A stretch of 64,000 nucleotides of DNA from Phyllobates terribilis (taxonomy: Eukaryota). The notes beneath the pieces are model-generated. The model saw only the letters and a program-made list of their open reading frames with translations, was not told where the DNA came from and ran no database searches. The stretch covers positions 333,064,001 through 333,128,000 of the forward strand of contig NW_027362767.1 in assembly GCF_046119375.1 (NCBI RefSeq), written 5' to 3'. Position numbers and translations under genes: made by a program. Positions 3,502-61,113 of this stretch are shown here, in pieces; within the stretch, counting starts at the first letter, position 1, and each line of letters starts with the position of its first letter.

Positions 3502-3529
3502 GTTCGGCAAGACCCTGGCGATCTGATAC

Positions 3530-11246: not shown

Positions 11247-12166
11247 GACCTCTCCGGGCAGGTACGGATCCGGTGCTCCTTACTGCCACAGTAGAAGCAG
11301 CTCCCTTCGGCACGGCGTAAGTCCTGACGGGTTTTGACCATCTTGGTCTGGTCGACCTGCATAGGCTCAGGAGAGTGTACCTGGGGAGAGACGGATTTCT
11401 GAAAAGTAGGAGCTAGACGTGGAAACCTCCTCTCACGGGTGACCTCTTTGGCACGCTCCTGGAACCGTAGGTCAATCCGGGTGGCAAGAGTTATTAGGTC
11501 ATCGAGAGTGGTAGGAATGTCCCGACCGGCAAGTTCATCTTTAATACGGCCGGACAGACCCTCCCAGGAGACGGATACCAGAGCGTCGTTATCCCAGGCC
11601 AGCTCCGAGGCAAGGGTACGGAACCGTATGGCATATTGGCCCACGGTGAGACTTCCCTGACGGAGGCGTAGCAGAGATGATGCGGATGAGGTCTTCCGTC
11701 TGGGTTCGTCGAAGATTTTCCGGAAAGCCATGAGAAAGGCAGGCAAGTCGGACACCAGGGGGTCTCCTCTCTCCCATAGAGGATTTAGCCAGGCCAGGGC
11801 CTCCCCGGTGAGATGGGACATGATGAAGGCAATTTTGGCCCGGTCGGAGTTAAACTGGTGGGACAGGAGTTCAAAGTGCAGGGTGCACTGATTTATGAAG
11901 CCCCGAGCCTGGGCGGAGTCGCCTCCGAAGCGAGGAGGTGCAGAAAGCCGGGGTCCGGGGTAGGATACCATGGTATTGGTGGGCAGCGGAGCTGCCGGGT
12001 TGCGAGTCATGGCACTGGCGGTGGTTGCTGGTGGAGCAGTCAGAGTGTCCAGGCGAGAATTGACATTCCGCAGGTGACCCAGGATGGACTCCTGTTGGGA
12101 CCTCTGATGGGACAGTTCATGACAGAGGTCCGAGAGCGAGGGAGCTTGGGTGCCACCGGGTTCCAT
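11228..12166 (-). CDS. gag: Gag (capsid plus CCHC nucleocapsid)
   Basis: ATG at 12166 (MEPGGTQ). Motifs PPRFGGD..ARGFINQC..AKIAFIMSHLTGEALAW and zinc knuckle CFYCGSKEHRIRTC; TAG at 11228. Confidence 0.95.
   Translation of the reverse strand: MEPGGTQAPSLSDLCHELSHQRSQQESILGHLRNVNSRLDTLTAPPATTASAMTRNPAAPLPTNTMVSYPGPRLSAPPRFGGDSAQARGFINQCTLHFELLSHQFNSDRAKIAFIMSHLTGEALAWLNPLWERGDPLVSDLPAFLMAFRKIFDEPRRKTSSASSLLRLRQGSLTVGQYAIRFRTLASELAWDNDALVSVSWEGLSGRIKDELAGRDIPTTLDDLITLATRIDLRFQERAKEVTRERRFPRLAPTFQKSVSPQVHSPEPMQVDQTKMVKTRQDLRRAEGSCFYCGSKEHRIRTCPERSGNACV
11240..11246 (-). promoter_or_regulatory. -1 ribosomal frameshift slippery heptamer G GGA AAC at the gag/pol junction
   Basis: gag reads TCG GGA AAC (SGN) while pol reads GGG AAA CGC (GKR), i.e. 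the -1 frame. The heptamer fits X XXY YYZ. Confidence 0.85.
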
Positions 12167-12167
12167 G

Positions 12168-12177
12168 GCCCGAGCAA
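12168..12177 (-). promoter_or_regulatory. Self-priming primer-binding site (Tf1-type)
   Basis: Sense PBS TTGCTCGGGC starts 2 nt after the 5' LTR. It is perfectly complementary to GCCCGAGCAA (13037-13028), which begins 30 nt downstream of TATATAA in the LTR. Confidence 0.8.
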
Positions 12178-12179
12178 AC

Positions 12180-13277
12180 TGTAACGGGTCTGGGAGGCGG
12201 AACATCTGAGCTACTATACAAGGGGGCGGTCCTTGTAAGGGAGCGGGTGGCGACCAGGGTAGACGGGCAGGCAGTCACAGCAGGCGACTGGGACAGTCTC
12301 TGAATGAACGGGCAGGAGGTCACGGCAAGTGACCGGGGCAGTCTCTGGATGAACGGGCAGGAGGTCACGGCAAGTGACCGGGGCAGTCTCTGGATGAACG
12401 GGCAGGAGGTCACGGCAAGTGACCGGGGCAGTCTCTGGATGAGCGGGCAGGAGGTCACGGCAAGTGACCGGGGCAGTCTCTGGGTAAAGGATTGGTACGA
12501 CCTGTGGCGGCAGATGATAGACGTGAGCTCCCAGGTGAGCAGGCGAGAGTCTCTGGATAATCGGGTGGTCACAGCATGTGACGGCGGAGCCTCCAGGAAG
12601 ATCAACAGACAGGTAGCAGATGAGCGCTCCCAGGTGAGCGGGCAAGAGTCTCTCAAATAGCAGGTGGTCACAGCACGTGACGGCGGAGCCTCCAGGTAGG
12701 CAAGCAGGCAGGTAGCGGAGGAGCGCTCCCAGGTGAGCGGGCAGGAGTCTCTGGAATAGCAGGTGGTCACAGCACGTGACGGCGGAGCCTCCAGGAAGGC
12801 TAGCAGGCAGGTAGCAGATGTGCGCTCCCAGGTGAGCGGCCAAGCTGGTCCATAGACAGACTGACAGGAGTAGGAAGGCAGACCGTCGGACCTCAGGCTA
12901 GCAAGCAGGTAGCAGGAATATCAGGCAGGAAACAGACAGCAAACTGGCAGGACTCTGGCTGGAATCAGGCAGGTAACTGGCAACGGGACCTGAGGGCTGA
13001 AGCAGAGTAGTGAACAGTGCAACAACATTGCTCGGGCACCTCCATTTTGGAGGAGGTGCCTTATATATGGTGAAGTCCTCCGGCCATTGGCCGGGGACTC
13101 CTTAGGACGGCGCGCGCGGCCCCTTTAAGAGGGAGGGAGCGCGCGCGCGCCCTAAGCACAGTGGCCGGGAAGGAGCGCGCGCTGCCAGCAGAGCGGGAGG
13201 AGGACGCCGGGCTCGGAGCAGAGAGGTGAGAGGAACAGCGTCCCTGCCTAGCAGAGGGCAGGGACGCCGACGCTACA
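12180..13277 (-). repeat. 5' LTR (1,098 bp) with TATA box at 13067-13061
   Basis: Direct repeat of 6884-7979. Confidence 0.95.
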
Positions 13278-16329: not shown

Positions 16330-18966
16330 TTAACTACTATTAATTAAAAATTACACTGTATAGTTGCATAAGTGGATACAGCAAATGCAGCCATATTGAT
16401 TGACTGCATTGAATTGGCTTCTCAGAAAGTATTTGAGAGGTTATCCAGAATGAAAACTTTGGCTACTTTCTTCCAAAAACAGAGCCGTATATGTATACAG
16501 GTTGTATGTGGAATTGCAGCTTATCGTATCGTATCAGAAAACAGAACAAACTAAGATATAATGCTGTGGATCTTAATCATCTTAGATTTTAATGTGGCTC
16601 CTATGCTTAAAAGAAAATAAAATTGGGAACCATAATGTTTCTTTATGACTAAGACATCGAAAAAAATGAATGAAATTAAATTATAAGGGAGTTGTTTGTA
16701 CAGTAAAAATAAAATGCAGACCTTGTAAGTCTTATTGCCAAATAACAGATATGAAATGTGATTGAGGTGGCTTTAAATTAGTAACTTGCACAATAAAACA
16801 TTTATAATAAAAAATCTGGTACAAAAAAAGCTCAATGGGAAGGAAGTTCTGTAATAATCATAATAATAATAATAATAATAATGATGATGTCCCTCCAACA
16901 CAACACACTTATCACCACTGCTCTGCTTACGTTTATGCCTAAAGTTATATTGCTGGACATGACGAACGTAATTGAAATGCAAAATGATGCATTCCAGGCT
17001 TGATTGCAATCAGGGATTTCTTTTTGTATAATTATGCCTAATCTGACACACGCTTGTTTTAAGCCAAGTAGACGCACTTCATACAAATCCCCAGTCTTGA
17101 CTATTAACCACACTGAAATGTTGCACAAGGTTTACCTGCAATGTCATAGATCAATTTGGCTTTTCCTCTGAAGTAAAAATTGGAGCACTCATCTAGTCAC
17201 TGTAAACACAGATTATGTTCTGTAGATCAGAAGCTCTTCAGGGTAATGAGCGCCTCTGTTGTTTTATTTTATCATTGTCACAGTAGGAGCCGCTAAGGAA
17301 GGATCGACACTTAGGGCTTGAATCATTTTTACATTTGAGCTTGTTTTTTGTTGAGTTTTAGATGTTTAGCGCCTTTTTTTACTCCCACCAAATTCATGTT
17401 TCCATCTTTCTTGAAGCCTATTTTATATTTATATAAAATCCTTTATATATTTGTTCAGAGGAGTTTAGGGTTTCCAGATGTTTTCGTCTGATACATCAAT
17501 TGCAACTTTTCAAAAAGTCACAAAATATGTTGAAAACGTTCTCTAGTCCCAGCCTACAGTGATTTTATGCACACTGGAATTTTTTTTTTTTAAGCAAGTT
17601 TTGCAACATTCTTAAAAATGTGCAACTTTTTGATCTAAAAAGATTCAAAAGTGGTTAAAGACAGAAAAAAAAGACCATTTTGCTCAAAAGTAATGAATCG
17701 TGTCCATCATTTTGATGAATTTGGTGCAAAAAACATCAACGAATAACACAAAACAAAGAAAGAAAAGAGAGTAGTAAAGCTGTAAATGATGAATCGGTCC
17801 TCTAGTCTTTAGGAACAGATACAGGACATACTCTTAAAGACATAAAGTATGCCTGGATAAATATTGAATGGACCTGACAATTTTGATGATTCTTCTGTGG
17901 GAAGATGTCGTGGAGGAGAATAATTGGGCGGTTGGTTTTCTTCGTGAGAATAATCCAATCTTCAATGGCGTGCTCCGAGACTGAATATATAGGTTCAAAT
18001 CCAGACATTATTAATCATATTTTAAAAATCCACAGGTCGGTGCAAATTCCTAAAAAAAAGCTGCATTTTGAATATCTTTTAGATCTGAAACGTATGTGTG
18101 GAGTTTTTTGAAGGTTGGATTTTCCCTCCTAGCTATCTCGGGCCTGGCACAGCGTTCGGCTGCTTTGTGCAAAAAGGGAAACATCAAGGACTTTACCAGG
18201 GATTTTTTATTTATTTAGTGGCGCTTCCTCGTGTAAGTCAGATAACAATCTATATTTTAACGAAAACTGCTGAAGAGTTGAGCTTTAATTTAAACAACTG
18301 TATTATCTTATTATCACATTATCATATTCCATAACACCTGGTATAAGGAGGAGGTGATAAAACAGAGCCTGAGGGAAAGGCGATACATGGCGTGCTGTCA
18401 CAGTGGGGGATATCATTCACAAGTTTTGTAAATATATACTCAACTTCAGCCTATCTGCTGTTCACAAAAGAACTTGTATTCTCTCCATGATATCCGGCAT
18501 AGACAATTTAATCGGCATTGATTGGCAATAATAAATGCTTGGTGAATGTGGCGAGTATACATTGATTGAAACAAACTCAAGCTCTATAATACTACAGCTT
18601 CCTAAAAGTATGGAGTAAATTTCCGTTTATTTTAGGCTTTTCCATTTTAGAAAATATGACTCAATATTGATCTAAAGGTATCACAAACTCAACTCTCTCC
18701 ATACAGCCAATTAGGATACATGGTCATCATGATTAGGCTTGCAAGCTTGGGACCAGCATGTATGAGCCAGGGGGAAGAGCTGTTAAAGAGTAGCTTTTTT
18801 GGGGCAGGTAAAGTCCATTCAAGTACTACATGATCATCCATTTACATAAAAGGCCATCATGCTATACTATATTTCCTCTGCAGAGCCCACCAATATATGC
18901 CAAACCTTTGATGATAAAACTGATGGAAAAGGATGTCTAAAGCAACGTCCACCAGTACAGCTTTAA

Positions 18967-19341
18967 AGAAGCACTCCTCCCATCAAAGTTTTTAGCCTCT
19001 TAATATATTGTAGTCATCATATTATATAGCACTGTGTACTTACAATTGCTCATTTTGCCTTTCTACCTAGTTAATTATTCTCTTTTCTCTGCTCTATGTA
19101 GAAACACGAAGTTTTTTTTCCCTGCATGAGTCACCCCCCTCTTCAACTCCAGACAGTTTATTCCTCCTCCCCTCTGCCAGGTACTTTTGTAGTCATGAGT
19201 CATACAGGGAAAAGAGACCTCCTGTTTCTACATAGAGCTTAGTCAGCTAGTCAGTTTTTAATCATGTGATGTCATAGGCCTAATGGAAAACAGAAGAATT
19301 AGCTGGGTAGAAAGGCAAAATGAGCAATTGTAAGTACACAG
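18967..19341. mobile_element. T2/Kolobok-like MITE with TTAA TSD
   Basis: TTAA|AGAAGCACTCCTCCCATCAAAG...TTTTGATGGGAGTGTTTCT|TTAA with inverted arms over 100 bp. Confidence 0.85.
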
Positions 19342-19635
19342 TGCTATATAATATGATTGCAATATATTAAATAGGATAAACATTTTGATGGGAGTGTTTC
19401 TTTAATTTTAAAATGGGAAGCGTTCAAAAAACAACCCTTTTAAAGCAGTTGTTTAAAGAGTTTGTAAAAACAATCAACTGTGCAATTTACCTACTAAAAA
19501 ATCTCAAGAAAAGGAGGATTTTTAATTCTATAGTTTCCTGCTCTCTGCCTAGGATACTAGCTATTTCTGCAGTCTCAGAGTAGCCAGTTTTTTAGGCAAG
19601 GAATATGTGCCAATTGCAGGCTCTAGGCTTTAGAT

Positions 19636-19799
19636 CAGGGTTCCCCAACTCCAGTCCTCAAGAGCCACCAACAGCTCATGTTTTCAGGATTACATTACAG
19701 TATTGCACATGTGATGGAATGATCACCAAAGCAATGCTAAGAAAATCCTGAAAATATGATCTATTGGTGGTTCTTGAGGACTGGAATTGGGGAACATTG
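19636..19799. mobile_element. hAT-type MITE
   Basis: TIR CAGGGTTCCCCAACTCCAGTCCTCAAGAGCCACC and its complement; 8-bp TSD CTTTAGAT / CTTTAGAG. Confidence 0.85.
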
Positions 19800-21294
19800 C
19801 TTTAGAGCCTGCAAGCTCTGCATCTGAAGCTTGATGAGTCTCTCTATCTGACTTGCGTCCGTGTCCCTGTACAGGGGTACTACTCCCATGCTTCCAAGGC
19901 AAAGCTGCCTGTGTTACCAGCCTGGGAAAGCTGTTCAGAACGGTCAATCCTCAGGAGTACACCAACCCCAGCAAGCAGGAAGCCATGAGGCTGGGGAGCA
20001 GTGAGCTCCTGATGAAAGAAAATGGGAACACTCCTTTGGCAACTAAGAAAGGTCAAAATAAAGGAAAAAAAATAAAAGATAAATAAAAAACAAAGTATCA
20101 TTTTGATCTAGAGTAAATTTACTTTTCCTGTCAAATATGTTTTGATCAGCAGTAAAGGAAAAAAAATGCCACAACAAAACTTGAACCCAGCCTGACTTAT
20201 TCATCCTGTCTTCGTTCTCTTGGGATTCTTCTACGGTAATACCAATGGGATATCAAGCAGCTGTAAAAGAGAAGTTCTACTTCCATACGACCATGTAGAC
20301 AAAATCCTTATTCAATATTTCAAAGATAACATAGTTGATGCCAGACATAGGGGAATACGATTTTCCCTTCATAATAAAATAACAGCATTGTTTTTTCTAT
20401 GCCTGGATAACATATAGACGGTGACCCATGTTATAGCTTGGGTGCTATAACTTTAATATTTGCTAAATGGAGTTTTAATGGCTGGTGCATAATAAAAGAC
20501 TAGAAAGCCATCTGATGGAAAATGCGTTTTCATTATGAAGATGCTGTTCGTCGAGATGGCATGGCTTATTGAAAATTTTGATAAAAAAAAGAGATTAGAT
20601 TTGGAGCAAGGGATCTCATTTCTTTGAATGACAAGAAAACTCAATACATCTAATCACTTCACTGACACCTATTGGGAAGCAAAATGCAGCCTGTTCTCTG
20701 AAACTCAATACTGCTTGTTAAACACTGGTGTACTTAGCAAGGTGCCAGGTAAATTGACTTTAAAAAATCCTCATCACAGCTGCTACAAAAGCATTTCATT
20801 TTTTAGTACTCTTTGCAAAATGAAATGAAATATAGAAACATTTGAGGCAGGTGAATAATGGTGCTTCACTTGAATTATCACAAGGGTTTTTTCTTCTAGG
20901 CATTACCTTTATCACTTTGAATGAAATCCAGATGGATAAACAGATGATTGTGCCAACCATACTGAGCGCTCAAGAAAACCTCAACCATGGCTGTGACCTT
21001 CCTGAACTTAGATAGCAAATGTTCCCAGTATACATATGGTATTGTCTATAATGTCAAAGATGTTTAGTGGCTCATTTTGTAATTTTCAACCTAGACAAGC
21101 CCCAAGGGCTGACTTACATATTAAATACATTGACCACCCAGAAAGATCTAAATTGCCATGAATACAAAGTGCCATGAGCAGGTATCTTATATCCTTGTAT
21201 ATGCCACTTATTGAATGCATTGCTTTTCCCCATTGTGTATGTCATCTCCTATTAAAGTACACCAACATCTTGCACCATTTTTAAAATTCAAGAA

Positions 21295-25545: not shown

Positions 25546-27489
25546 CTAAAAATCATTTTTATTAATTGAGTTTCATGAAAAACATTGCCCTTTTTTATCT
25601 TCTCTAGCCTCTGTGTTGTACTGTCTATTGCAAGCTGCAGAATGAGGTACCTGAGAATCCACCAGTGAGCTCATTCTGACAGTCTAGTGGGAGAGTTTCT
25701 AATTCTTTAATTCTTTTTAAAGCTGATTTATGTCCCTAGACCACATCACGGTTAAATGTGCAGAGAAACAAAAAGCCAATCAAAGGAAAACAGTGCAACG
25801 TTTTTAATGAAACTGTAAAGATGATTTTTAGCCAAGATACATAAGTATAAGTTACAAGTAAAATTGTCCCCAGAGGTCGACATTGCTCTTTAATTACTTA
25901 AACTTTACTATACGGCACATTAAAATACAAAAAAGGATGAATAATATGTTTAGTTATCAAAGTTCCGCAATAAGGGTCCAATAAGAAAAGATCAATTCAT
26001 TTGTATTTAGAAATATCGTATTCACCGCAGAAGCATCCATGCTAATAAATATATATTTTTTTATAATTTAGCTCTACATGTTAAATTGTATTTTTATGCT
26101 TGGAAGGGATAGCCAATGCTTGCCAATTACAAGATAAATTAATGTTGTAGTTCAATATTAGACAGCAATAATTATTGTTCCCGTATCATTTAAAGTGAGA
26201 CCATTAACATCTGCATAAGGTCCATTAATTGTATCAGGCAGTCTATTATCTCATCTGTCCGGATAGTCATATGTTCCAATGAATAATGTGTAAAGTTAAA
26301 AAAACTTCTGACCTACGAACAACTAAATTACATGCTCACGGCACCTCATCGGAGATTATTTATTAAAAGCTGTCTCCGTTATCAATTTATCTGTTCTATG
26401 ACATTTATGAGAATTGTTTTTACTGTTTTAAGGACTTCATGTCCAACCACTGAAATATAATGTGCCTTAGTATTTAAAGAAATGACAATTACGCCTGTAG
26501 TCCATTAGATGCCAGGAACTCTGCTTTTTGACATGCCAACATGTATCCTATGACAATACCTACTAATTGTAGGGAGCAATGTTAGTTGTCCAGGCATAGC
26601 TACATAAAAAGGAAAATTTGACTTTCTATTTGAGGTCTTCTTCTACACTAGTGTGACATGCAGAAGGAAGTGTCCTGCTTCAGAAGCATCCAGCAACTAG
26701 AGGGATTAACACAGTCACAGGAGACAGGGAGTGGTTAGCAGAGCCTCAGGAGGATTGTGGGGGAGTTGTTTACTATTCTGGTTGCAGCCAAAGAGAGTCG
26801 TGTGTGTGTGATCTGTTCCTGACAGAAGCACAGGCAAGTGAACAAAATTTAAGTCAAGGGTGAAGCTAGGCAAAGGTCACCTACCCTGCATTGCTAGTTC
26901 AGGAAGTCTGTCATCAGGCAGGAAGATAAGGACTGGAAGGAATTGTGTTACAGGGATCATCTCCCTCATCAAACCCTCCCTCCTCCATATCCATGCAGCA
27001 TAAAGAATGCTGTGTACTATTGTGCCTTTGTGAAGGAAAAAACTGTTGTTGTGGGTGCATAGAAGCAGGGCCGGCATCAGCACCCGGGCAAATGCCGGGG
27101 CCCTGAGCAGGCAGAGGGGCCCACTGGCGGTCGCGCACCCGGCTGGGCTATGGGCGGAGGAGAGCGGTGTCAGCGCCCGCCCTTCTCCGCCGCTTGCTCA
27201 GGGCCCCGGCAGCAGGATACTTACCTCTCCCCGTGCCTCCGCAGATCAGCTGTCTTCCTGCTCTGCGCTCCCTGTGACGTCTCAGGTCAGAGGGCGCGGT
27301 GACGTCTTTACACCGCGCCCTCCCCTGAGCCGTCACAGGGAGCGCTGAGCAGGAAGAAGCCGACAATGCTGGAGTTCGGACCCGAGCAGCGGGCAGCAGG
27401 TAGCAGGTGAGGAGAAGGGAGGTGAGTATTTGATTTTTTTTTTTAATGCATGGAGGCATGGGGCAGTATAAAGAGAAGGGGGGGGGCAT

Positions 27490-28460
27490 CCTGCATGGGG
27501 CATTATAAAGAGAGGGGGGGGACATCCTGCATGGGGCATTATAAATAGGGGGGGTGACATCCTGCATGGGGCATTATAAGGTGGGGAACAGCCTGCATGG
27601 GGCATTATGAAGGGGGGGGCAGCCTGCATAGTGCATTATGTGGGGGGGAACAGCCTGCATGGAGCATTATAAGGGGGGGCAGCCTGTATGGGGCATTATG
27701 TGGGGGGGAACAGCCTGCATGGAGCATTATAAGGGGGGGCAGCCTGTATGGGGCATTATGTGGGGGGTAACAGCCTGCATGGAGCATTAAAAGGGGGGTC
27801 CTGTATGGGGCATTATGTGGGGGGTAACAGCCTGCATGGAGCATTATATGGGGGCCAGTATCCTGTATGGAGCATTATAAGGGGACCGGTATCCTGTATG
27901 GAGCGTTATATGGGGGCCAGTATCCTGTATGGAGTTTTATAAGGGGACCAGTATCCTGTATGGAGAGTTATATGGGGGCCAGTATTCTGTATGGAGCTTT
28001 ATAAGGGGACCAGTATCCTGTATGGAGAGTTATATGGGGGCCAGTATTCTGTATGGAGCCTTATATGGGGGCCAGTATTCCGTATGGAGCCTTATATGGG
28101 GGCCAGTATTTCGTATGGGGCCTTATATGGGGGCCAGTATTCCGTATGGAGCCTTATATGGGGGCCAGTATTCTGTGTGGAGCCTTATATGGGGGCCAGT
28201 ATTCCGTATGGTGCCTTATATGGGGGCCAGTATTCCGTATGGGGCCTTATATGGGGGCCAGTATTCGGTATGGAGCGTTATATGGGGGCCAGTATTCCGT
28301 ATGGAGCCTTATATGGGGGCCAGTATTCCGTATGGAGCCTTATATGGGGGCCAGTATTCCGTATGGAGCCTTATATGGGGGCCAGTATTCCATATGGAGC
28401 CTTATATGGGGGCCAGTATTCTGTATGGAGCCTTATATGGGGGCCAGTATTCTGTGTGGA
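27490..28460. repeat. Compound G-rich minisatellite (about 30-bp CTGCATGGGGCATTAT.. units grading into 31-bp CAGTATTCCGTATGGAGCCTTATATGGGGGC units)
   Basis: Period 31 measured at 28321, 28352, 28383 and 28414. Confidence 0.92.
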
Positions 28461-28545
28461 GCGATTCACCGGTTTCTGAGCTATTGTGGAATTTACAATA
28501 GATATCGCTCATGTAATGTAAGAAGTGAAATCTTTGCATTGTACT

Positions 28546-28576
<31 letters not shown>

Positions 28577-28578
28577 AA

Positions 28579-29790
28579 TGTAGCACCCTGAGGATTCGGC
28601 TGCTACAGGGGTATTGCACCTCAACCCAGAGGTGTGATATTCCACTCCCGGGTAAGGATGGAGTGTGGAACTGAGCTCGGTAGGCTGCATGCACTACACA
28701 CATCCCATTTCCGGGGAACAGGCCGACGGTACTCCCACTTAGAAATGTGCAGGTACGACCGAGTCTGTTCCTGGCTGGAGTGGGAGGGGGGTGGTACATC
28801 CCAAGTAGTGTAGGGGCAGATAGGGGGAGCAGCCTGGGTAAAGATAGGAGCTCATTGGGTGCTGGTCACCTGAGCTCACACATAGAGGGTGTATATAAGG
28901 TGGGCACCATCAAAGAACAGGGTCAGTCAGCCACAGTCAGTCAGGCTGTGAGTCTTTGCAGAGAGAAGTCAGAGGAGCAGAGCAGCCCCAGAGAGAGAGA
29001 GAGGAGAAGAGAGAGAGAGACCCAGAGGGGGAAACTGAAGAAAAGGACTCCAAGAACCTAACTTAAATCCCCGGGTGAAGAGTCGGCACAGGGTACCGGA
29101 ACCCAAGCTGGTGGGGGCAAAAACACTCCCCAGCCAGAGACCGGAGACCGTGGGCAGCGTTTGCCACGGTCACCCACCACATCCACCACGAAGGCATACC
29201 ACGAGGAGGGTCAGGGAACCCAAGGCCAAGGGTCTCCCAACAGAAGGCCCGAGGGAGCTGGACCTGGGTGGATCAATAGTGGGGACGGCCAGAGAAAGGA
29301 CAGAAGGAGAGCTCAGGGTCACGCTCCGGACTTGCTTGGGGGTTGGCTGGATCCAGGACCTGGTGGATGCAGCACGGCTCGGGAGGTCACTTGAAGCTGG
29401 AGTGACCGGAACATCAGCAGTGAGTAAATACCCTTAACTGCATAACCCGACTCTGTCTTCATTACCATCTATGCTGCACCACCACAACCCCCATCCTCTG
29501 CACCTGACCCCCTGAGGCTATACCCCACCCGTTGGGGGTTATATCATCACAAGCTGCACCTACACCATCAGCCTCAGCGGACCCTGCTGCAGCGGCGGCC
29601 ATAGTGACCGCAATACAACGGGTGACGTAGTCGACAAAAAGAACTTAGTAACATCAGTAAGGACTGCCACATACAACTGAGTTTGACACCCTGGGCACGG
29701 ACCGGGTCACAGCCACTCGGAAGACTACAACTCCCATCTGATCCGGCTCCGGATATTCCCCCTAAAGAATATGGCCCAGGGGGCGCGTCA
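28579..29790 (+). repeat. 5' LTR (TATA box GTATATAAGG at about 28891; AGTAAA poly(A)-like signal at about 29425)
   Basis: Direct repeat offset by exactly 3,672 bp from 32251-33462. Confidence 0.95.
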
Positions 29791-31840
29791 ACTTTGGCGT
29801 AGTCGGCAGGATTACGTGCCCGCAACACCCGGGTACTGCGTGCCTGAAGGAAAGTGCAAGTTTACCTCAAGAAGAAGTCTCCTGCCGGTTCCGGAGGGTC
29901 CCCGCCATCGGACCCCATCACCAGTCGATTCCAGCCGGTTGTCCGCCATTAACAACTTTTTCCCGCCATCTGCAGAGTTTCCCGCCACTGGGAAGCGATT
30001 CCCGCCATTTCCAAAGGTTTCCCGCCTTGGAAGAGCGGACGCCATTATGGGCGTGCCAGAGGGTGGCGAGAGGCCGCCTCCCATCGTGGGCCAGGACCGA
30101 AAATGGCGCCAAAAGTGGAAACCGCCCCCACCAACAGAGACTGTGATGCTAGAGGTGTCTGTCAGCGTGAAAGAACCGCCCCTGGAGCTGACAGTCACCC
30201 AGTGGCCCCGGGACCGCCCTCGAAGTGGGAGGAGACGAAAGAAAAGAACGAAGATGGGTGCCGCCTGGAGCAGTCTAGAGCGAGCGCACCCGGAGGCAAG
30301 AAGCCTGGAGAAGAGTAGCAGAGAAGCTCACCCGGAGATGGCGAGAGAGCAGAGCAGCACCGGCCCGCTGGCCAGGAGCCTGCTGGAAGAAGAGCAGAGC
30401 AGCACCGACCCGTTGGTCAGGAGCCTGCTGGAAACCACGACCCCACTAGGCCTAGTGGAGGTCCTTGCACAGCTCCCCCGAGACCGGGAGTGTGCACAGA
30501 CTGCCCTGGAGGGCCTCGCACGGAGGATGGCCCGGGTACAGCGAGAGACATTGGCGGAGTGGAGCCGAGAGATGGCCCAGCAAACCAAGACCCGGAGCAC
30601 GCCAGCCAAGATGAGGAGACAGACCGCCTCTGAGGATGGCGCGGGAGGACCCAAGGCCGGAGACGGCGCCGAGAAGGGAGCCGAACGCATGGAGGCAGGT
30701 AAAGGGGACGTCTATACCCCAAACAAGGACACCGCTTGCCTGCCCCAGCTCCCCGTCGCAGAGCCCGAAAGTCCCCCTGCTGTGCCCGAAAACGCCATGT
30801 CACCGACGCAGACTAGGCCCCAACCGGAAGCCGCCGCCGCGACCCCTGTGACGTCACACGCACCGACCCCGAGCGTGACCAAGCAGGAAGTACCACCAGC
30901 CTGGTCGCAGGGCCTAGAATTCCCGGGCGTCGCATCACCAACAGCGCCCCCTACCTCCGCGGAGCCTCCGGCCTGGCCGCAAGGCCAGGTAGCCCAGGGC
31001 GCCGCCGTCCTAACGGTGCCCTTCACCTTCCAGGTGCCCCAGGCCTGGCCGCAAGGCCTGGGCAACCCGGGCGCCACCACCACCGCGCCCGCACCCGTAA
31101 AACCAAGGGTGCCGCGTCTGGGAGAGGACTTGTTTGCCCAGCACACGTGGCCGGACGGGCAGCCTTTCATCTGGCCCCAGGAATATTATGGACTGGAGCG
31201 CCAGAGGAGGGTTGGGGCCATGTGTGCACCCCTGATTCCGGCTCCGAAGCCCGTGATAAGGATCTCGCCCCCGCTTGGAGAGACCCAATTTGAGTGGGAC
31301 CCCACCGGAGAAGACCTAATGGGGTTCACTCAGGAAACCAGGGCAGCTGCAGCAGAGCGTGCTGAGTGTTGCCGACAGCAGCTCGAGGAGTTTGCGAGGG
31401 AGCGGAGAGAGAGGCGGGTCCGGGAACAACAGGCCCAAATAAGGAGCGCCGAGCAGAAGAGCCGAACCAGGAGGGACCCCCGTGCAGCGCACAGTCCCCG
31501 CACCACCGGGACTGTAGTAAAGTTTAACCTGCAGCACGGGTGGGGCTTCAACAGAGACAACAACACCCCCGGCGACGTCTTTGTCACGCGCAGAGATGTG
31601 GAGTCCCATCTGCCGGAGGGGCACAGAGGTCGTGACCTTTACATCGGGGACGAGGTCACCTTTACCCGGCACAAGTGTGCCAAAGGACCTTACGCCCTCC
31701 ATGTGCATCGCCTGACAGAAGAGGAGCTGCGATGTGAGGAGGAAGAGCAAGAGGATACGGACGGGTCTGAAGCTGAGATCCCCAAAGAAGGAGCAGGAGG
31801 AAGACGTTGTTGGGTACAGCGGAGCAGGTGCTGTAAATAG
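29771..31840 (+). CDS. 689-aa retroelement-encoded protein: low-complexity Pro/Ala-rich and coiled-coil regions plus a C-terminal Y-box-like cold-shock domain (aa 578-647); true start codon uncertain
   Basis: Stop-free over 2,067 nt. TGTVVKFNLQHGWGF...GDVFVTRRDV...LYIGDEVTF...KGPYALHV aligns with the YBX1 CSD GTVKWFNVRNGYGFI...EDVFVHQTAI...VGDGETVEF...KGAEAANV. Confidence 0.8.
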   Translation: MAQGARQLWRSRQDYVPATPGYCVPEGKCKFTSRRSLLPVPEGPRHRTPSPVDSSRLSAINNFFPPSAEFPATGKRFPPFPKVSRLGRADAIMGVPEGGERPPPIVGQDRKWRQKWKPPPPTETVMLEVSVSVKEPPLELTVTQWPRDRPRSGRRRKKRTKMGAAWSSLERAHPEARSLEKSSREAHPEMAREQSSTGPLARSLLEEEQSSTDPLVRSLLETTTPLGLVEVLAQLPRDRECAQTALEGLARRMARVQRETLAEWSREMAQQTKTRSTPAKMRRQTASEDGAGGPKAGDGAEKGAERMEAGKGDVYTPNKDTACLPQLPVAEPESPPAVPENAMSPTQTRPQPEAAAATPVTSHAPTPSVTKQEVPPAWSQGLEFPGVASPTAPPTSAEPPAWPQGQVAQGAAVLTVPFTFQVPQAWPQGLGNPGATTTAPAPVKPRVPRLGEDLFAQHTWPDGQPFIWPQEYYGLERQRRVGAMCAPLIPAPKPVIRISPPLGETQFEWDPTGEDLMGFTQETRAAAAERAECCRQQLEEFARERRERRVREQQAQIRSAEQKSRTRRDPRAAHSPRTTGTVVKFNLQHGWGFNRDNNTPGDVFVTRRDVESHLPEGHRGRDLYIGDEVTFTRHKCAKGPYALHVHRLTEEELRCEEEEQEDTDGSEAEIPKEGAGGRRCWVQRSRCCK
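29795..29813 (+). promoter_or_regulatory. Primer-binding site complementary to tRNA-Ser (AGA/CGA/TGA isoacceptor family)
   Basis: TGGCGTAGTCGGCAGGATT is the reverse complement of the vertebrate tRNA-Ser 3' end AATCCTGCCGACTACG-CCA (19/19). Confidence 0.93.
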
Positions 31841-32241
31841 TTACCCGATCGGGGTATAAAGAAACTGTTACTGCAAATATAGTCCCCGTTGGGACCAGCT
31901 GAGTGAACTGTTTACCCGTTTACCCTTAATCCCACAGGCTGAGGACTGTGAGCAGCCATTCCCTTTCCCTCCTTAACTGGCCGAGGACTGAGAGCGGCCA
32001 TACCCCTGTATATAGTTGCGCGTCCTAAAGCGCCCCCTACCGGTTTTATAGGAAAACCATGTTTTTCTAGAAAGACTGTCGCACTTTGCCCGGTCAACAG
32101 TTGCACAGTGACCGGAGGAGGAGCCAGAGGCGACGAGAAAGTTTTATATATATAATGTTTTATATATTTTATATGTTTATGAAAAATTTTGTATGTTTTT
32201 GGTGTTATGTCTTACAGCCCGAGGACGTGCTGTGATTTACC

Positions 32242-32250
32242 AGGGGGGAA
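32242..32250 (+). promoter_or_regulatory. Polypurine tract
   Basis: AGGGGGGAA immediately before the TG of the 3' LTR. Confidence 0.88.
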
Positions 32251-33462
32251 TGTAGCACCCTGAGGATTCGGCTGCTACAGGGGTATTGCACCTCAACCCA
32301 GAGGTGTGATATTCCACTCCCGGGTAAGGATGGAGTGTGGAACTGAGCTCGGTAGGCTGCATGCACTACACACATCCCATTTCCGGGGAACAGGCCGACG
32401 GTACTCCCACTTAGAAATGTGCAGGTACGACCGAGTCTGTTCCTGGCTGGAGTGGGAGGGGGGTGGTACATCCCAAGTAGTGTAGGGGCAGATAGGGGGA
32501 GCAGCCTGGGTAAAGATAGGAGCTCATTGGGTGCTGGTCACCTGAGCTCACACATAGAGGGTGTATATAAGGTGGGCACCATCAAAGAACAGGGTCAGTC
32601 AGCCACAGTCAGTCAGGCTGTGAGTCTTTGCAGAGAGAAGTCAGAGGAGCAGAGCAGCCCCAGAGAGAGAGAGAGGAGAAGAGAGAGAGAGACCCAGAGG
32701 GGGAAACTGAAGAAAAGGACTCCAAGAACCTAACTTAAATCCCCGGGTGAAGAGTCGGCACAGGGTACCGGAACCCAAGCTGGTGGGGGCAAAAACACTC
32801 CCCAGCCAGAGACCGGAGACCGTGGGCAGCGTTTGCCACGGTCACCCACCACATCCACCACGAAGGCATACCACGAGGAGGGTCAGGGAACCCAAGGCCA
32901 AGGGTCTCCCAACAGAAGGCCCGAGGGAGCTGGACCTGGGTGGATCAATAGTGGGGACGGCCAGAGAAAGGACAGAAGGAGAGCTCAGGGTCACGCTCCG
33001 GACTTGCTTGGGGGTTGGCTGGATCCAGGACCTGGTGGATGCAGCACGGCTCGGGAGGTCACTTGAAGCTGGAGTGACCGGAACATCAGCAGTGAGTAAA
33101 TACCCTTAACTGCATAACCCGACTCTGTCTTCATTACCATCTATGCTGCACCACCACAACCCCCATCCTCTGCACCTGACCCCCTGAGGCTATACCCCAC
33201 CCGTTGGGGGTTATATCATCACAAGCTGCACCTACACCATCAGCCTCAGCGGACCCTGCTGCAGCGGCGGCCATAGTGACCGCAATACAACGGGTGGCGT
33301 AGTCGACAAAAAGAACTTAGTAACATCAGTAAGGACTGCCACATACAACTGAGTTTGACACCCTGGGCACGGACCGGGTCACAGCCACTCGGAAGACTAC
33401 AACTCCCATCTGATCCGGCTCCGGATATTCCCCCTAAAGAATATGGCCCAGGGGGCGCGTCA
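32251..33462 (+). repeat. 3' LTR of the CSD element
   Basis: Direct repeat of 28579-29790. Confidence 0.95.
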
Positions 33463-34307
33463 TATATATATATATTTCTCCGCCGTATCTCTGCATCATG
33501 AATCGTGGTATGTGTTAAAGGGGCCCACTGAAACTCTTTCGCCCGGGGCCCAGAAAAACCTGGAGCCGGCCCTGCATAGAAGTGTGCTGCTAAAGAGACT
33601 TGATCTGTGCTGTACTGTGCTACTAGGAAAGACTTTTTATTAATGTGCCTATGCAAGAAGAAGCTATTACTGTTATTGAAGCCTGTTGCTTTAAGAAATT
33701 AATGTTTTGGATTGTCCGAGCTGTTGCAAGAGTCATGAAGACTCTTGCCAAATGTGTCTGGTCAGCAAGTGAATCCACCTACATGTTTGTCCCTGAGAGA
33801 AGCTGCAGCACATGGTCTATGGTCGCCCTGAGTGACGATTCCCCCAAAATTCATGAAACCTGTCTCTCCCCTATCTAAACCTAGTGGCGTGCGTGTAACA
33901 TTAGTCTTTACCCAATACAGTTCCTTGAAAACCGAGAGTACTGGACACTGGAATCTATTTGGTTAGAGTCTCCATACACTGAATGACAGCAACTCTGAAA
34001 CTAGGGATGGGGCCTTTGTAGGGGTCCCCAGCAGAGTGACACTGGTTCAGGCATTCCCTTATGGTGAAAGCTTTGGGGATTATCGATATAGACCAATTTA
34101 GGTTTTCATTGAAACCCAACAGTTTATTCATGCTGCTCCAACCATGAGCAGAATGAATTAGAGACTAGATATATTATTGCAGCCATGTATGTTTAATGTT
34201 GAAACACTTCTGTATTTCAGACAAAATAGGCTAACTGGGGGCAATGCGACTAGGAAGACTAGTCTAAGGCAGATGCTAGACTGGTTTTCCCTATCTCATC
34301 CCTTTAA

Positions 34308-40951: not shown

Positions 40952-42521
<1,570 letters not shown>

Positions 42522-44064
42522 TATGCATGTTTTTCTCAATATCTGACATGAATTCAGAATATCTCATGATGCTATCTATTTTGTGAAGTGCACCAGTTCC
42601 TCCTGTAGAAAAACAACCCCACAACATGATGCTGCCACCCCTGTGTTTCACAGTTGGGATGGTGATTTTAGGATTCCAAGCTTCTCCCTTTTTTCTCCAA
42701 AAGTAACGATGGTCATTATGCCCAAAAAGTTTAAGTTTCGTTTCATCAGACCACAGGACATTTCTCCAAAAATTAAGGTCTTTGTTCCTGTGTGCATTTG
42801 AAACCATTAATCTAGCTTTTTTATGTTTATTTTGGATTAATGGCTTCTTCCTGGCAGAGTGGCCTTTCAGCCCATGTTGATATAGTACTTGTTTCACTGT
42901 GGATATTGACACAATCTTATCAGCTTCCGCCATCATCTTCACAAGGTCTTTTGCTTTTGTTCTTGGGTTGATATGCACATGTCGGACCAAAGCACGTTCA
43001 TCTCTGGGACATAGAACCCGTCTCTTTCCTGAGCGGTATGATGGCTGGACATTCCCATCTTTTATGTACTTGTGTATAATTGTTTGTACAGATGAACGAG
43101 GCACCTTCAGGTATCTTGAAATCATACCCAAGGATGAGACAGACTTGTGAAAGTCCACTATTCTCTTCCTGATATCTTGGCTGGTTTCTTTAGACTTTCC
43201 CATGATGCTACACAAACAAGCAGTGTGTTTCAGGTGTGCATTAAAAAACATCCACAGGTGTGTCTCTAATTAACTCAGATGTTGCCAAAAAAATCTATCA
43301 GAAGCTTCCAAACACATGACATCATCATATGGGCAGTCCAGAATTGTTTAAAGGCATAGTAATCTTAGTGTATGTAAACTTTTGACTTTGTATAAGTAAT
43401 AAAAATGCCTTAAAACATTCTCTCTCTCATTATTCTGGCATTTGGCAAATATTAAAAATTATGGTAATCCTAATTGACCTAAAATGTGAAAGGTTTATTC
43501 TGATTTCATGTCAGATATTGAGAAACACATGCATATGTGTCTTTTTATATAGTGTATGTAAACTTCTGGTTTCAACTGTACTCCAGCATAATAAAGACTA
43601 AATTTAACCATCTATTTGACAGAAGGGTTAGCAATGCTTAATAGTCCACATATACAGTTTAGTCCAGATTTATGTGGACAGTAACAAATAGCCTCTGAAC
43701 ACCAGTCTGGAGTGCAATACTTTGTATACGTTGGTGCTTTGCTAGGTCTTTACCGCAATCACTAGTAAAGACTAATGTGGCCTCTTTATTTTTGAGTATT
43801 AAGGATGCATTTACTCTGAAAGATTATAGTGAAATGTGGGTTCCCATGAACACTTGTTTCATGGCAATCCTGCAGTGTAAACAGGCAGCCGATCACCCGA
43901 TGAAAGAGCAAAACACTCATTTGTCGGGTGAAATTATTTTATTTTCTGCTGCACAAAATAGCCTCTTTCTCGGCAGCACATCATTCTGTGTAAACAGAAC
44001 TCATGCTGCTGAGAACACTGACAGCCTGTGCACACTAAATCTATGACAGGCTGTTTAGTGCACA

Positions 44065-45414: not shown

Positions 45415-47062
45415 CAGTTAGGTCCATATATATTTGGACAGAGACAACATTTTTCTAATTTTGGTTCTAGACATTACCACAATGAATTTTAAACAAAACA
45501 ATTCAGATGCAGTTGAAGTTCAGACTTTCAGCTTTCATTTGAGGGTATCCACACTAAAATTGGATGAACGGTTTAGGAGTTTCAGCTCCTTAACATGTGC
45601 CACCCTGTTTTTAAAGGGACCAAAAGTAATTGGACAATTGACTCCAAGGCTATTTCATAGACAGGTGTGGGCAATCCCTTCGTTATGTCATGCTCAATTA
45701 AGCATATAAAAGGCCTGGAGTTGATTTGAGGTGTGGTGCTTGCATTTGGAAGGTTTTGCTGTGAAGTAAACATGCGGTCAAAGGAATTCTCCATGCAGGT
45801 GAAACAAGCCATCCTTAAGCTGCAAAAACAGAAAAAACCCATCCGAGAAATTGCTACAATATTAGGAGCGGCAAAATCTACAGTTTGGTACATCCTGAGA
45901 AAGAAAGAAAGCACTGGTGAACTCATCAATGCAAAAAGACCTGGGCGCCCACGGAAGACAACAGTGGCGGATGATCGCAGAATAATCTCCATGGTGAAGA
46001 GAAACCCCTTCACAACAGCCAACCAAGTGAACAACACTCTCCAGGAGGTAGGCGTATCAATATCCAAATCTACCATTAAGAGAAGACTGCATGAAAGTAA
46101 ATACAGAGGGTTCACTGCACGGTGCAAGCCACTCATAAGCATCAAGAAGAAAAAGGCTAGACTGGACTTTGCTAAAAAACATCTAAAAAAGCCAGCACAG
46201 TTCTGGAAGAACATTCTTTGGACAGATGAAACCAAGATCAACCTCTACCAGAATGATGGAAAGAGAAAAGTATGGCGAAGGCGTGGTACAGCTCATGATC
46301 CAAAGCATACCACATCATCTGTAAAACACGGCGGAGGCAGTGTGATGGCTTGGGCATGCATGGCTGCCAGTGGCACTGGGTCACTAGTGTTTATTGATGA
46401 TGTGACACAGGACAGAAGCAGCCGAATGAATTCTGATGCATTCAGAGCCATACTGTGTGCTCAGATCCAGCCAAATGCAGCCAAACTGATTGGTCATCGT
46501 TTCATACTACAGATGGACAATGACCCAAAGCATAAAGCCAAAGCAACCCAGGAGTTTATTAAAGCAAAGAAGTGGAATATTCTTGAATGGCCAAGTCAGT
46601 CACCTGATCTCAACCCAATTGAGCATGCATTTCACTTGTTAAAGACTAAACTTCAGACAGAAAGGCCCACAAACAAACAGCAACTGAAAACCACCGCAGT
46701 GAAGGCCTGTCAGAGCATCAAAAAGGAGGAAACACAGCGTCTGGTGATGTCCATGAGTTCAAGACTTCAGGCAGTCATTGCCAACAAAGGGTTTTCAACC
46801 AAGTACTAGAAACGAACATTTTATTTACAATTATTTAATCTGTCCAATTACTTTTGGTCCCTTTAAAAACAGGGTGGCACATGTTAAGGAGCTGAAACTC
46901 CTAAACCCTTCATCCAATTTTAATGTGGATCCCCTCAAATGAAAGCTGAAAGTCTGAATTTCAACTGCATCTGAATTGTTTTGTTTAAAATTCATTGTGG
47001 TAATGTCTAGAACCAAAATTAGAAAAATGTTGTCTCTGTCCAAATATATATGGACCTAACTG
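45415..47062 (+). mobile_element. Full-length Tc1 transposon with TIRs of about 220 bp
   Basis: TA|CAGTTAGGTCCATATATATTTGGACAGAGAC...GTCTCTGTCCAAATATATATGGACCTAACTG|TA. Confidence 0.96.
45772..46809 (+). CDS. Tc1 transposase, uninterrupted ORF (345 aa, DD34E)
   Basis: MRSKEFSMQVKQ..., RPGRPRKT, WTDETK, KHGGGSVMAW, MDNDPKH...SPDLNPIEH, ends KGFSTKY*. Confidence 0.88.
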   Translation: MRSKEFSMQVKQAILKLQKQKKPIREIATILGAAKSTVWYILRKKESTGELINAKRPGRPRKTTVADDRRIISMVKRNPFTTANQVNNTLQEVGVSISKSTIKRRLHESKYRGFTARCKPLISIKKKKARLDFAKKHLKKPAQFWKNILWTDETKINLYQNDGKRKVWRRRGTAHDPKHTTSSVKHGGGSVMAWACMAASGTGSLVFIDDVTQDRSSRMNSDAFRAILCAQIQPNAAKLIGHRFILQMDNDPKHKAKATQEFIKAKKWNILEWPSQSPDLNPIEHAFHLLKTKLQTERPTNKQQLKTTAVKACQSIKKEETQRLVMSMSSRLQAVIANKGFSTKY

Positions 47063-49456: not shown

Positions 49457-49538
49457 TTGGTTGTGGCCGTGCTGTTAAGGCGATGGACTAAAAATCCATT
49501 AAGTTCTCTCTGCCCAGGTTGACATCCTGCCGACTACG
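49457..49538 (+). pseudogene. tRNA-Ser-derived pseudogene, unit 2
   Basis: 82 nt, 98 bp downstream of unit 1. TTAAGGCGATGGACTA(A)AAATCCATT...CAGGTTGACATCCTGCCGACTACG; anticodon mutated to AAA. Confidence 0.85.
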
Positions 49539-50812
49539 TCTCTGTTCCCACAACTTATTAGTGGCCGACAGGTTTTAAAATACATAGCATTTCAAGGAAA
49601 CATGCACACTAACCATTTTAAAGAATGTTTTTTGGTTACTATAAGTGTTTCACTTTGTCATCTGTCCCAATGGAATGAAAAGAATCCACAGACTGATTTG
49701 CTATTATCGGATTTCATAAAACATAGTAGTTTTGGTTTAAATTGGTTTAATGTTTTAATTTTTAAGGAAATTTGTGAGGTAGAAAGTTTTGAGAAAATTT
49801 TTTATCTAGATATGGCAACCATGACAAAAAAAAGACAGATTCATGATCTGTTCTTGGTCTTTCCAGACAATTTTAAACAATCCACATTAGGGTCTCGTGC
49901 ACACAACCATTTAAATTGGATGAGTGCTATCCGTGGTTTTGATGGATAATACTAGTACCCATGTTATGCTAAGGGGCTGTGCACATGTCCAATTTTTTCC
50001 TTGACCCGAACGGTCTGAGTGATAAAAGGGTGACATGTCTGATTTTAATCTGAGTGTCGGATCAAAATCGGCAATGCAAGTCTATGGGTTCATGGAGAAC
50101 ATCGGACAGCAGTTGTATAAAATCTGAGTGTGGTCCGATTTTAACAAACTGACTGAATAGAGAAGGTGGAGAAACTTTTCTCTTTCTCAGCACCTAAGAG
50201 AAAAATGGGTTATGCTAATCAGAGTCTGATTAGCATAATTGGACCATTTTCTTGGATGAAGAGAAAACAGTTGTGTGACCCTAACCTTCAGATGTGATAC
50301 ATCCTGTTGTGTTGCGATAAGATTTGAGTTTATTTTCCTTCTCTTAACTTTCTTTATTTTTTTATTTTGTAAAGTAAAATAATGTGATATGTTCACATTT
50401 GAATGTAAAACTTAAAATCACAAATGAAGAAAATAAAAAAGTGGAATATAAATGCCTTTCTGTAACTTTCTATGAAAACTTTATCATGTTTTGGTCTTAC
50501 TTTCAAATATTAAAAAATGGCAAAGACTCATGAGGCAACCTTGACATTGCTTTTTCCCAATAGCTGTAGCCCCAGAAGTTGAGGGTCTACTTTTCAATAC
50601 ATGAAGGCATTAGAGTAACATGGAATGAATATCTCAATGTCCTATCGTGTCATCTCTCCGACAGAGGGTGTCTGAAGAGTGAATGATTTTCAACACCCAA
50701 TCCTTTGATTCTATGGCATATTGCCTCCCAATGTCTTACTCCTTTCTGTTCATTCAGAACACTTGCATGCTTGGTCAAAATGAGTGTGCATGTGAATAGG
50801 GAAGGTGGGCAG

Positions 50813-57887: not shown

Positions 57888-61113
<3,226 letters not shown>

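Follow-up and report, generated by a model that had tools for sequence, protein, structure and literature searches.

A gag- and pol-less LTR retroelement of poison frogs whose single gene encodes a cold-shock-domain protein

Structure of the element and its open reading frame

The window analysed here is a stretch of 64,000 nucleotides (nt) from the poison frog Phyllobates terribilis (contig NW_027362767.1, positions 333,064,001 to 333,128,000). It contains a retroelement of 4,884 nt (28579-33462) that is bounded by long terminal repeats (LTRs) and lies at the position given by an earlier reading of the letters alone (the sequence-only reading). The element carries all the cis-acting parts for reverse transcription and integration, namely LTRs, a primer-binding site (PBS), a polypurine tract (PPT) and a candidate 4-bp target-site duplication (TSD), and it encodes no enzymes and no capsid. 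A single open reading frame (ORF) takes up 2,050 nt of the 2,460-nt internal region, and the only recognisable domain of its product is a C-terminal cold-shock domain (CSD). A second full-length homologous element is present in P. terribilis at L001:7941-13029, around the gene of protein P0001. The element in the window is a very recent insertion and belongs to a non-autonomous LTR family of dendrobatoid (poison) frogs. The coordinates of its features are collected in Table 1.

The ungapped direct repeats (28577-29790 and 32249-33462, 1,214 nt each) are offset by 3,672 nt and differ at one position, which is A at 29625 and G at 33297. After trimming to TG...CA, the LTRs run from TGTAGC to GCGTCA and are identical at 1,211 of 1,212 positions. 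All 19 nt of the PBS are complementary to the 3' terminus of human tRNA-Ser-AGA/TGA (tRNA sequence from PMC10359600), and 100 shuffles gave no chance match to this string. The TSD of the window copy is imperfect: the two flanking tetranucleotides, situated inside a (TA)n tract, match at three of four positions, whereas the L001 copy has a perfect ACAA/ACAA duplication. The two LTR-borne GTGAGTAAA motifs and their L001 counterpart GTAAGTAAA all retain the GTRAGT splice-donor consensus together with the AGTAAA variant; AATAAA or ATTAAA occurs in neither LTR. The motif is a candidate poly(A) signal, a candidate splice donor or both, and the borders between U3, R and U5 are putative. An Rfam scan of the element returned no significant match.

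The LTRs of the L001 copy are identical over all 1,245 aligned nt. As the LTRs of a copy differ by 0-1 substitutions, each of the two copies must be young. Assuming 1-2.5e-9 substitutions per site per year, a copy would be less than about 0.4 million years old.

The long ORF begins at an ATG in a good Kozak context (A at -3, G at +4). This ATG falls in the final 20 nt of the LTR and so occurs twice, once in each LTR; the frame then runs through the PBS. The ORF frame has no stop, while the remaining five frames carry 8-22 stops each. None of 5,000 composition-preserving shuffles left the whole ORF free of stops, and the chance probability for the first 252 codons is 4.5e-4. The sequence-only reading had described a young retroelement with two 1,212-nt LTRs differing by one mismatch, a 19-nt tRNA-Ser PBS, a PPT and a stop-free ORF of 689 codons, and each of these was recovered. 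The start of the ORF in U5 with its passage through the PBS, the imperfect TSD and the absence of a coding signature in codons 1-120 are additional to that description.

Table 1. Features of the element in the window. L001 denotes the locus of the second full-length copy.
Feature	Position	Strand	Remarks
5' TSD candidate TAAA	28575-28578	+	end of the (TA)16 microsatellite
5' LTR	28579-29790	+	1,212 nt, TG...CA
TATATAA box in 5' LTR	28892-28898	+	kept in the L001 LTR at 8254
GTGAGTAAA	29420-29428, 33092-33100	+	AGTAAA (poly(A)-signal variant) overlapping a GTGAGT donor-like motif; L001 counterpart at 8807-8815
Long ORF	29771-31840	+	689 codons + stop; ATG in U5; homologous L001 ORF of 710 codons, intact
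Leader, first ~120 codons	29791-30130	+	nucleotide identity to L001 87-95%; without coding signature
PBS TGGCGTAGTCGGCAGGATT	29795-29813	+	4-nt spacer from LTR; same sequence at L001:9188-9206
In-frame 45-nt tandem repeat, EQSSTGPLARSLLEE-type	30346-30433	+	2 copies in the window, 3 in L001
Internal Met253, alternative start	30527-30529	+	context GAGGATGG; NCBI-annotated start of P. terribilis P0001
Conserved module, codons 441-650	31091-31720	+	dN/dS 0.07-0.13
Long alpha-helix, residues 521-567	31331-31471	+	rich in Arg/Glu/Ala/Gln (R 25%); pLDDT 85-92
CSD, five-stranded beta-barrel, residues 577-647	31499-31711	+	by Pfam, PDB profile and Foldseek
3' untranslated internal region	31841-32241	+	76-88% identical to L001; indels relative to L001 not multiples of 3
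PPT AGGGGGGAA	32242-32250	+	directly against the 3' LTR; identical in L001
3' LTR	32251-33462	+	1,212 nt, 1 mismatch to 5' LTR
3' TSD candidate TATA	33463-33466	+	beginning of the remaining (TA)n

No Gag, protease, reverse transcriptase (RT) or integrase (IN) was detected in the ORF by Pfam, and the remaining internal and LTR ORFs had no Pfam match. BLASTP and tblastn searches with gag and pol of the window's own Gypsy elements found no similarity in the CSD element. The AlphaFold2 model of the ORF product matched no gag/pol fold among the PDB folds searched with Foldseek, and the viral structure library BFVD returned CSD/OB-fold proteins only and no retroviral fold. The statement that capsid, protease, RT, integrase and a CCHC motif are all missing, made at first from the letters alone, is in agreement with the results from Pfam, the PDB profile search, tblastn and AlphaFold2/Foldseek. 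An autonomous element requires Gag, protease, RT/RNase H and integrase, none of which is encoded here. As the element has neither RT nor IN, dependence on a helper would follow by necessity. RT and IN are equally absent from terminal-repeat retrotransposons in miniature (TRIM) and large retrotransposon derivatives (LARD), the interiors of which are non-coding, whereas the interior of the present element holds a 689-codon ORF under selection.

The insertion occupies a (TA)n tract. The (TA)16 microsatellite at 28545-28576 comes next after a minisatellite with about 33 copies of a 31-bp unit (27476-28462), the units of which give spurious ORFs of 160-190 amino acids. A possible second PBS at 49523-49541 was rejected, since it has three mismatches and forms part of a degraded tRNA-Ser-like sequence on the + strand (49460-49545; GTGGCCG...GGACTAAAAATCC...ATCCTGCCGACTACG) instead. 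ARAGORN made no call for the latter, which is probably a tRNA pseudogene or the tRNA-derived head of a short interspersed nuclear element; it displays the tRNA-Ser 3' arm sequence of this genome.

The cold-shock-domain protein and its relatives

The CSD is the sole Pfam match of the ORF product (PF00313, residues 579-646), and this match is marginal, with 27.3 bits against a cutoff of 27. PF00313 is, however, matched in all six family members, the best E value being 6.9e-9. When the family profile was compared with the PDB, YB-1/YBX2 ranked first (36.5 bits, E value 4e-8), followed by CspA (31 bits), Lin28 (19) and CRHSP-24 (18); besides CSD structures, nothing was found at E<=1. The AlphaFold2 model was built on a shallow alignment of six sequences, which limits its sensitivity. 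The protein is mostly disordered in this model, 462 of its 689 residues having a predicted local distance difference test (pLDDT) score below 50. The confidently predicted parts are helices within residues 214-273 (including 239-273), a long helix (521-567), the barrel (577-647) and a short helix (650-661). The five strands of the barrel (577-586, 591-596, 602-606, 628-636 and 639-647) have pLDDT values of 72-89. Foldseek aligned the barrel with CspA at a template-modelling (TM) score of 0.89-0.90 (E value 8.5e-8), and YBX1/2, CRHSP-24 and Lin28 were also matched. The claim that a C-terminal CSD is the only recognisable domain is thus upheld by Pfam (marginally for the window protein), by the family profile against the PDB and by AlphaFold2 with Foldseek.

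By composition, the N-terminal 520 residues are rich in Pro, Ala, Arg and Ser, and the tail is acidic. In every family member the CSD follows a charged helical segment. In the window protein, hydrophobic heptad positions are few in this Arg/Glu-rich helix, which is therefore not called a coiled coil. The RNP1-like motif G(W/Y)GF(I/N) is kept, and RNP2 reads VFV(T/A/N), its His having been lost.

The term "Y-box-like", used in the sequence-only reading, has modest support. The family profile ranks YB-1/YBX2 above bacterial Csp, Lin28 and CRHSP-24, and the protein resembles YBX1 and YBX2/FRGY2 in its long beta3-beta4 loop, the Ala/Pro-rich region N-terminal to the CSD and the charged surroundings of the domain. 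It differs from them in that the CSD is only about 30-32% identical to those of YB-1/YBX2, the equivalents of the RNP2 His and of Trp65 are replaced, the loop has a motif of its own, and a short acidic tail stands in place of the alternating basic/acidic C-terminal domain. Judged by these sequence features, the protein is closest to CSDs of the Y-box type but is neither a member of the YBX family nor a YBX orthologue.

When 1.84 billion representative proteins were searched exhaustively with the profile, five clear family members besides the window protein were found. P0001 of P. terribilis, annotated as "uncharacterized protein", is the one close database relative. The others are P0002 of Ranitomeya variabilis (XP_077147014), P0004 of Ranitomeya imitator, and P0003 and P0005, two divergent paralogues of Anomaloglossus baeobatrachus. 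The members have in common the charged helix and the CSD with its invariant, family-specific loop RRDVExHLPxGHxxRD; at the N-terminus they have low-complexity sequences that show no relationship to one another. The CSDs of the members are 45-60% identical to one another, even in the case of the two Anomaloglossus paralogues, and 47-57% identical to that of the window protein. The gene models of three relatives consist of exactly one exon. In this same search the N-terminal 520 positions were matched by P0001 only (from position 280), no other protein matching any position below 525, and no match joined the helix and CSD module to Gag/Pol domains. The weaker matches P0006-P0033, which are dinoflagellate multi-CSD, bacterial Csp-like and marine metagenome proteins, were rejected as members.

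Word-indexed protein searches, which were swamped by low complexity or restricted in length, returned P0001 and P0003-P0005 and no further members, and the exact window protein has no database entry. Nothing was found in metagenome and viral contigs scanned with the family profile or in metagenomes scanned with the U5-PBS string. Two remoter relatives are P0034 of Bufo bufo (XP_040278526), the CSD of which is 39% identical (pairwise E value 3e-14), and the unnamed P0036 (L004 384-1436) from sequencing run ERR14218477. Both carry the loop signature of the family (FVxRRSVKRxYLP) and not a true YBX CSD. The annotation of the Bufo protein as "Y-box-binding protein 2-A-like" is probably a misnomer, and poison frogs may not be the only hosts of the family.

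It is conceivable that the ORF encodes a highly divergent, particle-building Gag, in which the CSD has taken the place of the zinc-knuckle nucleocapsid (NC) and from which only pol is missing. The ORF is in the position of gag and starts at the U5/PBS boundary, as the Gag of Ty1 does, its C-terminal RNA-binding-type domain mirrors the position of NC, and the six-sequence alignment could have limited the recognition of a fold by AlphaFold2. Nevertheless, the model contains no capsid-like fold: outside the C-terminal module, the Pro/Ala-rich chain has only the short helices within residues 214-273. Furthermore, there was no Gag match in Pfam, the PDB profile search, Foldseek against the PDB or BFVD, and the N-terminal regions are not conserved among the members. 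Of the explanations considered here, a cryptic Gag is the least probable, and a very improbable one.

Two features of the disordered region were noted in passing. A polybasic stretch, SGRRRKKRTK (residues 152-161, 30224-30253), corresponds to SGRRRKRRAK in L001 and resembles either a nuclear-localisation signal or a site of the furin type. The tetrapeptide PTAP at residues 391-394 was dropped as a candidate late domain, as it is not kept in L001.

Selection on the coding region in two independent copies

The L001 copy contains an intact ORF of 710 codons, which begins at the same LTR-embedded ATG. The flanks of the two copies cannot be aligned except for unrelated transposon fragments, and the copies are therefore independent insertions. 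The existence of a full-length relative with an intact ORF at a non-orthologous P. terribilis locus establishes a family instead of a single locus, as had been proposed from the window sequence. The two elements are 82% identical overall (about 18% diverged).

The ratio of nonsynonymous to synonymous substitution rates (dN/dS) was estimated with the Nei-Gojobori method (NG86) and a Fisher test on this one pair of full-length copies. It amounts to 0.28 over the complete ORF (p=2e-27), 0.29 for codons 120-252 (p=8e-5), 0.52 for codons 253-440 (p=0.004) and 0.12 for codons 441-689 (p=1.5e-31). A comparison of this kind had been put forward as a check on the sequence-only reading, and the outcome, low ratios overall and in the helix and CSD module with both ORFs intact, is in its favour. 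In codons 441-650 the differences are concentrated at third positions (56 vs 20/24, and 30 vs 7/6). The conserved modules of the two copies are separated by 99 synonymous vs 69 nonsynonymous changes. Each of the six ORF indels preserves the frame, its length being divisible by three, which does not hold for those in the LTRs and the 3' untranslated region (UTR).

The first 120 codons behave differently. Their dS is 0.11 and their dN/dS 0.85 (p=0.83), the differences are distributed over the three codon positions as 11/11/11, and there is no periodicity in the GC content of third positions. The leader following the PBS is a candidate for a conserved cis-acting region of RNA or DNA that happens to be an open frame, and more particularly a candidate packaging/dimerisation region of the RNA.

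The divergence between the copies is uneven in other respects as well. The conserved module has a nucleotide identity of 74-77% and a dS of about 1.1, while the non-coding LTRs and 3' UTR are more similar (83-94%). Relative to the first 120 codons, the CSD module shows about 10 times the synonymous divergence. The copies agree at 95% of positions in an island at 30979-31128, beyond which the identity drops sharply to 74% (31129-31720). This pattern may reflect recombination between subfamilies, that is, a mosaic history, or constraint on the LTR and leader at the nucleotide level.

As both copies are fresh, the differences between them arose in lineages that were still transposing. The low dN/dS would accordingly represent selection for the element's own propagation and not for a host function, and the constraint is best read in this way. 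Recent mobility in two lineages and purifying selection on a CSD gene that is intact in both copies are shown by the data.

The possibility that the CSD ORF is a passenger has to be weighed against this. The ORF would then be a host gene or retrogene, transduced by an LTR element as in maize Bs1 or acutely transforming retroviruses, with no role in transposition, its low dN/dS having been inherited from, or refreshed by, the host gene. Related single-exon CSD genes are indeed annotated as ordinary genes in several frogs, and gene-fragment capture seems to occur here, as judged from the LONP1-like/FMRP-KH-like ORF described below, which is 6 kb away from the CSD element at L001. The copies, however, with 0 and 1 LTR differences, have not existed long enough for selection to have acted at their present loci, and yet the synonymous changes outnumber the nonsynonymous ones. 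Nor was a close host counterpart found, the nearest named vertebrate protein being that of Bufo and the true YBX CSDs being still more distant. Finally, the extent to which member CSDs differ even within one genome is that of diversified transposon lineages and not of a conserved host gene. A passenger role is accordingly considered improbable.

Selection might also act in another place. The gag/pol-less form could be a defective by-product that arose by deletion from a complete retrovirus or endogenous retrovirus (ERV) with a CSD and is mobilised by that autonomous parent. The CSD, which would be an accessory gene or a Gag fusion in the parent, as reported for bird ERVs, would be maintained by selection there. 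The 4-bp TSD, the TG...CA LTRs and the junction of GGGGGGAA with TG are compatible with an ERV1-like origin; the duplication and the junction resemble those of gamma-type retroviruses such as murine leukaemia virus (MLV), which is a lead only. ERV1 is the youngest LTR class in another dendrobatid, Dendrobates tinctorius (PMC11152451), and PF00313 CSDs are known from two major groups of bird ERVs (PMC12287698). The uneven divergence described above is likewise suggestive of recombination with other lineages. On the other hand, two copies that are about 18% diverged and inserted at unrelated loci have the same gag/pol-less structure with the same boundaries, and the defective form must thus have been propagated as such for a long time. 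Among the 1.84 billion representatives, moreover, no protein joins the N-terminal 520 residues or the CSD module to Gag/Pol. Such a parent is an unlikely explanation, less so than a passenger role. It overlaps with selection for propagation of the gag/pol-less element, the sole difference being where selection acts.

Possible mode of propagation, comparison with other elements, and neighbouring sequences

The observations described above argue that the CSD protein serves the element's own propagation, to which a probability of about 0.6 is assigned. The element appears to need an RNA-binding protein of its own. The most likely role of this protein, put forward tentatively, would be to bind the single-stranded RNA or cDNA of the element as a chaperone, or as a packaging or protection factor, in place of nucleocapsid.

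The sequence of events could then be as follows. The LTR promoter would produce the element RNA. An autonomous element of the same genome would supply RT and IN in trans, and the RNA would be reverse-transcribed and integrated. Helper particles would probably package the RNA. The CSD protein would coat or chaperone the single-stranded RNA or cDNA of the element, substituting for nucleocapsid according to a logic similar to that of LINE-1 ORF1p, and the conserved leader after the PBS would be its likely cis target or packaging region. In this way the protein would secure privileged use of the helper machinery for a parasite without gag. A more far-reaching and more doubtful version of this scheme is that an LTR lineage gave up Gag entirely and took in its place a captured CSD protein of the Y-box type, which delivers the element's own RNA to the RT machinery of a helper.

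Several points weigh against the proposal that the protein functions in propagation through RNA binding. The dN/dS values are derived from just two full-length copies, and the uneven dS (0.11 to >1) may mean recombination, which complicates their interpretation. Some of the Ranitomeya, Anomaloglossus and Bufo relatives, which are known as gene models alone, could be host genes. RNA binding by the protein is a prediction. YB-1 has four base-stacking residues, W65, F74, F85 and H87; in the alignment, the residues corresponding to F74 and F85 do not vary, but W65 and H87 have been replaced. The composition of the helix does not support a coiled-coil oligomer like that of ORF1p. No helper element was identified, the chromovirus of the window having been excluded (see below). 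Lastly, codons 1-120 evolve like non-coding sequence, leaving the true start codon and the size of the product uncertain. The product may start at Met1, with its good Kozak context, or at the conserved internal Met; the choice does not affect the conclusion on the C-terminal module.

The element can be compared with several known systems. TRIM and LARD elements and the mouse elements ETn and VL30 have LTRs, a PBS and a PPT without RT or IN, are mobilised in trans and can be recently active. These families are defined by non-coding internal regions, whereas 84% of the interior of the frog element is one ORF with a strongly selected C-terminal module. Maize Bs1 and gene-transducing defective retroviruses are, like the frog element, pol-less and helper-dependent and have coding cargo derived from the cell. 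Their cargo consists of recent, recognisable fragments of host genes and is a passenger with respect to transposition, whereas the cargo of the frog element belongs to an old, highly diverged domain family with several lineages in different frog genera, and it seems to be under selection in the lineage that transposes.

The protein of the non-LTR element LINE-1, ORF1p, consists of a trimeric coiled coil followed by an RNA-recognition motif and a C-terminal domain. It resembles the frog protein in its way of working and not by homology: each is a non-enzymatic protein of the nucleic-acid-binding type, in which a long helix precedes a small domain of the RNA-binding type. The frog protein differs in that its helix has no clear heptad pattern, its small domain belongs to the CSD type and it is encoded by an LTR element.

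The closest parallel comes from birds. A 2025 survey (Mol Biol Evol) reported 46 bird ERVs with PF00313 CSDs, which were captured several times, and interpreted the capture as possibly adaptive for the retroelement (PMC12287698). Because the survey detected these ERVs, members of the ERV-A/B and ERV-G groups, by way of their RT, they possess pol; their CSD is an additional domain of varying position (PMC12287698). Compared by description only, they are, like the frog element, vertebrate LTR-bounded retroelements encoding a PF00313 CSD. The frog element is distinguished from them by the lack of gag and pol, the CSD protein as sole gene, purifying selection measured between two young copies and an amphibian host. 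The supposition that no LTR family with this cargo had been described thus needs to be narrowed. CSD cargo is not wholly unprecedented, given the bird ERVs; a frog family without gag and pol was not found described. Beyond that survey, literature searches found neither an LTR retrotransposon described as carrying a CSD nor an account of this frog family.

If the proposed role is correct, a ribonucleoprotein strategy like that of ORF1p has evolved within an LTR element, and, taken together with the independent captures in birds, CSDs would confer a general advantage on the replication of retroelements. Non-autonomous LTR elements are usually regarded as non-coding hitch-hikers. An element whose sole gene encodes a selected RNA-binding protein other than Gag would imply that an element which parasitises another parasite can maintain an RNA-handling factor of its own. 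The family may serve as a tractable system for the minimal cis requirements of an LTR element, the hijacking of helper particles and enzymes, and the repeated recruitment of CSDs in birds and frogs. Several frog gene models named "uncharacterized" or "Y-box-binding protein 2-like" may be transposon genes.

The window contains other mobile elements. A near-intact Ty3/Gypsy element of the chromovirus type is located on the minus strand at 6884-13277, flanked by a 5-bp TSD (ATATA). Its LTRs (6884-7979 and 12180-13277) are 99.0% identical, its gag ORF (11228-12205) encodes Retrotrans_gag and a CCHC motif, and its pol ORF (7950-11024) encodes RT, RNase H, integrase and a chromodomain. The LTR opens with TGTAGC, the same hexamer as in the CSD element. 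Beyond this hexamer there is no similarity of LTRs or proteins, and the PBS and the length of the TSD are different, so that this chromovirus was rejected as the helper. The 4-bp TSD and the PPT junction of the CSD element would fit an ERV1/gamma-like or a Ty3-type helper and are not diagnostic.

An older, internally deleted Gypsy-like element occupies the minus strand at 423-4464. Its LTRs (423-1326 and 3530-4464) are about 90% identical, and it keeps a gag-protease ORF (2215-3354) together with a fragment of integrase (1402-2202). Five Tc1/mariner transposase ORFs or fragments with a Sleeping-Beauty-like helix-turn-helix and DDE_3 are found at 5677-6654, 41285-42316, 42460-43251, 45733-46809 and 59118-60162, and a unit of about 1.6 kb is present in inverted and direct repeats (55717-57349 and 58701-60327).

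At L001, some 5-8 kb downstream of the CSD element, the region 18005-21181 has intronless ORFs in which coiled-coil-like sequence is abundant. One of them, a 566-codon ORF whose 3' side is cut off by the end of the locus, combines a Lon-protease-like segment of the mitochondrial type (residues 45-168) with segments similar to the KH0 and KH domains of FMRP (189-364) and has a 39-nt tandem repeat. From its sequence it looks like a chimeric gene that was retro-copied or captured by a transposon, again of the RNA-binding type.

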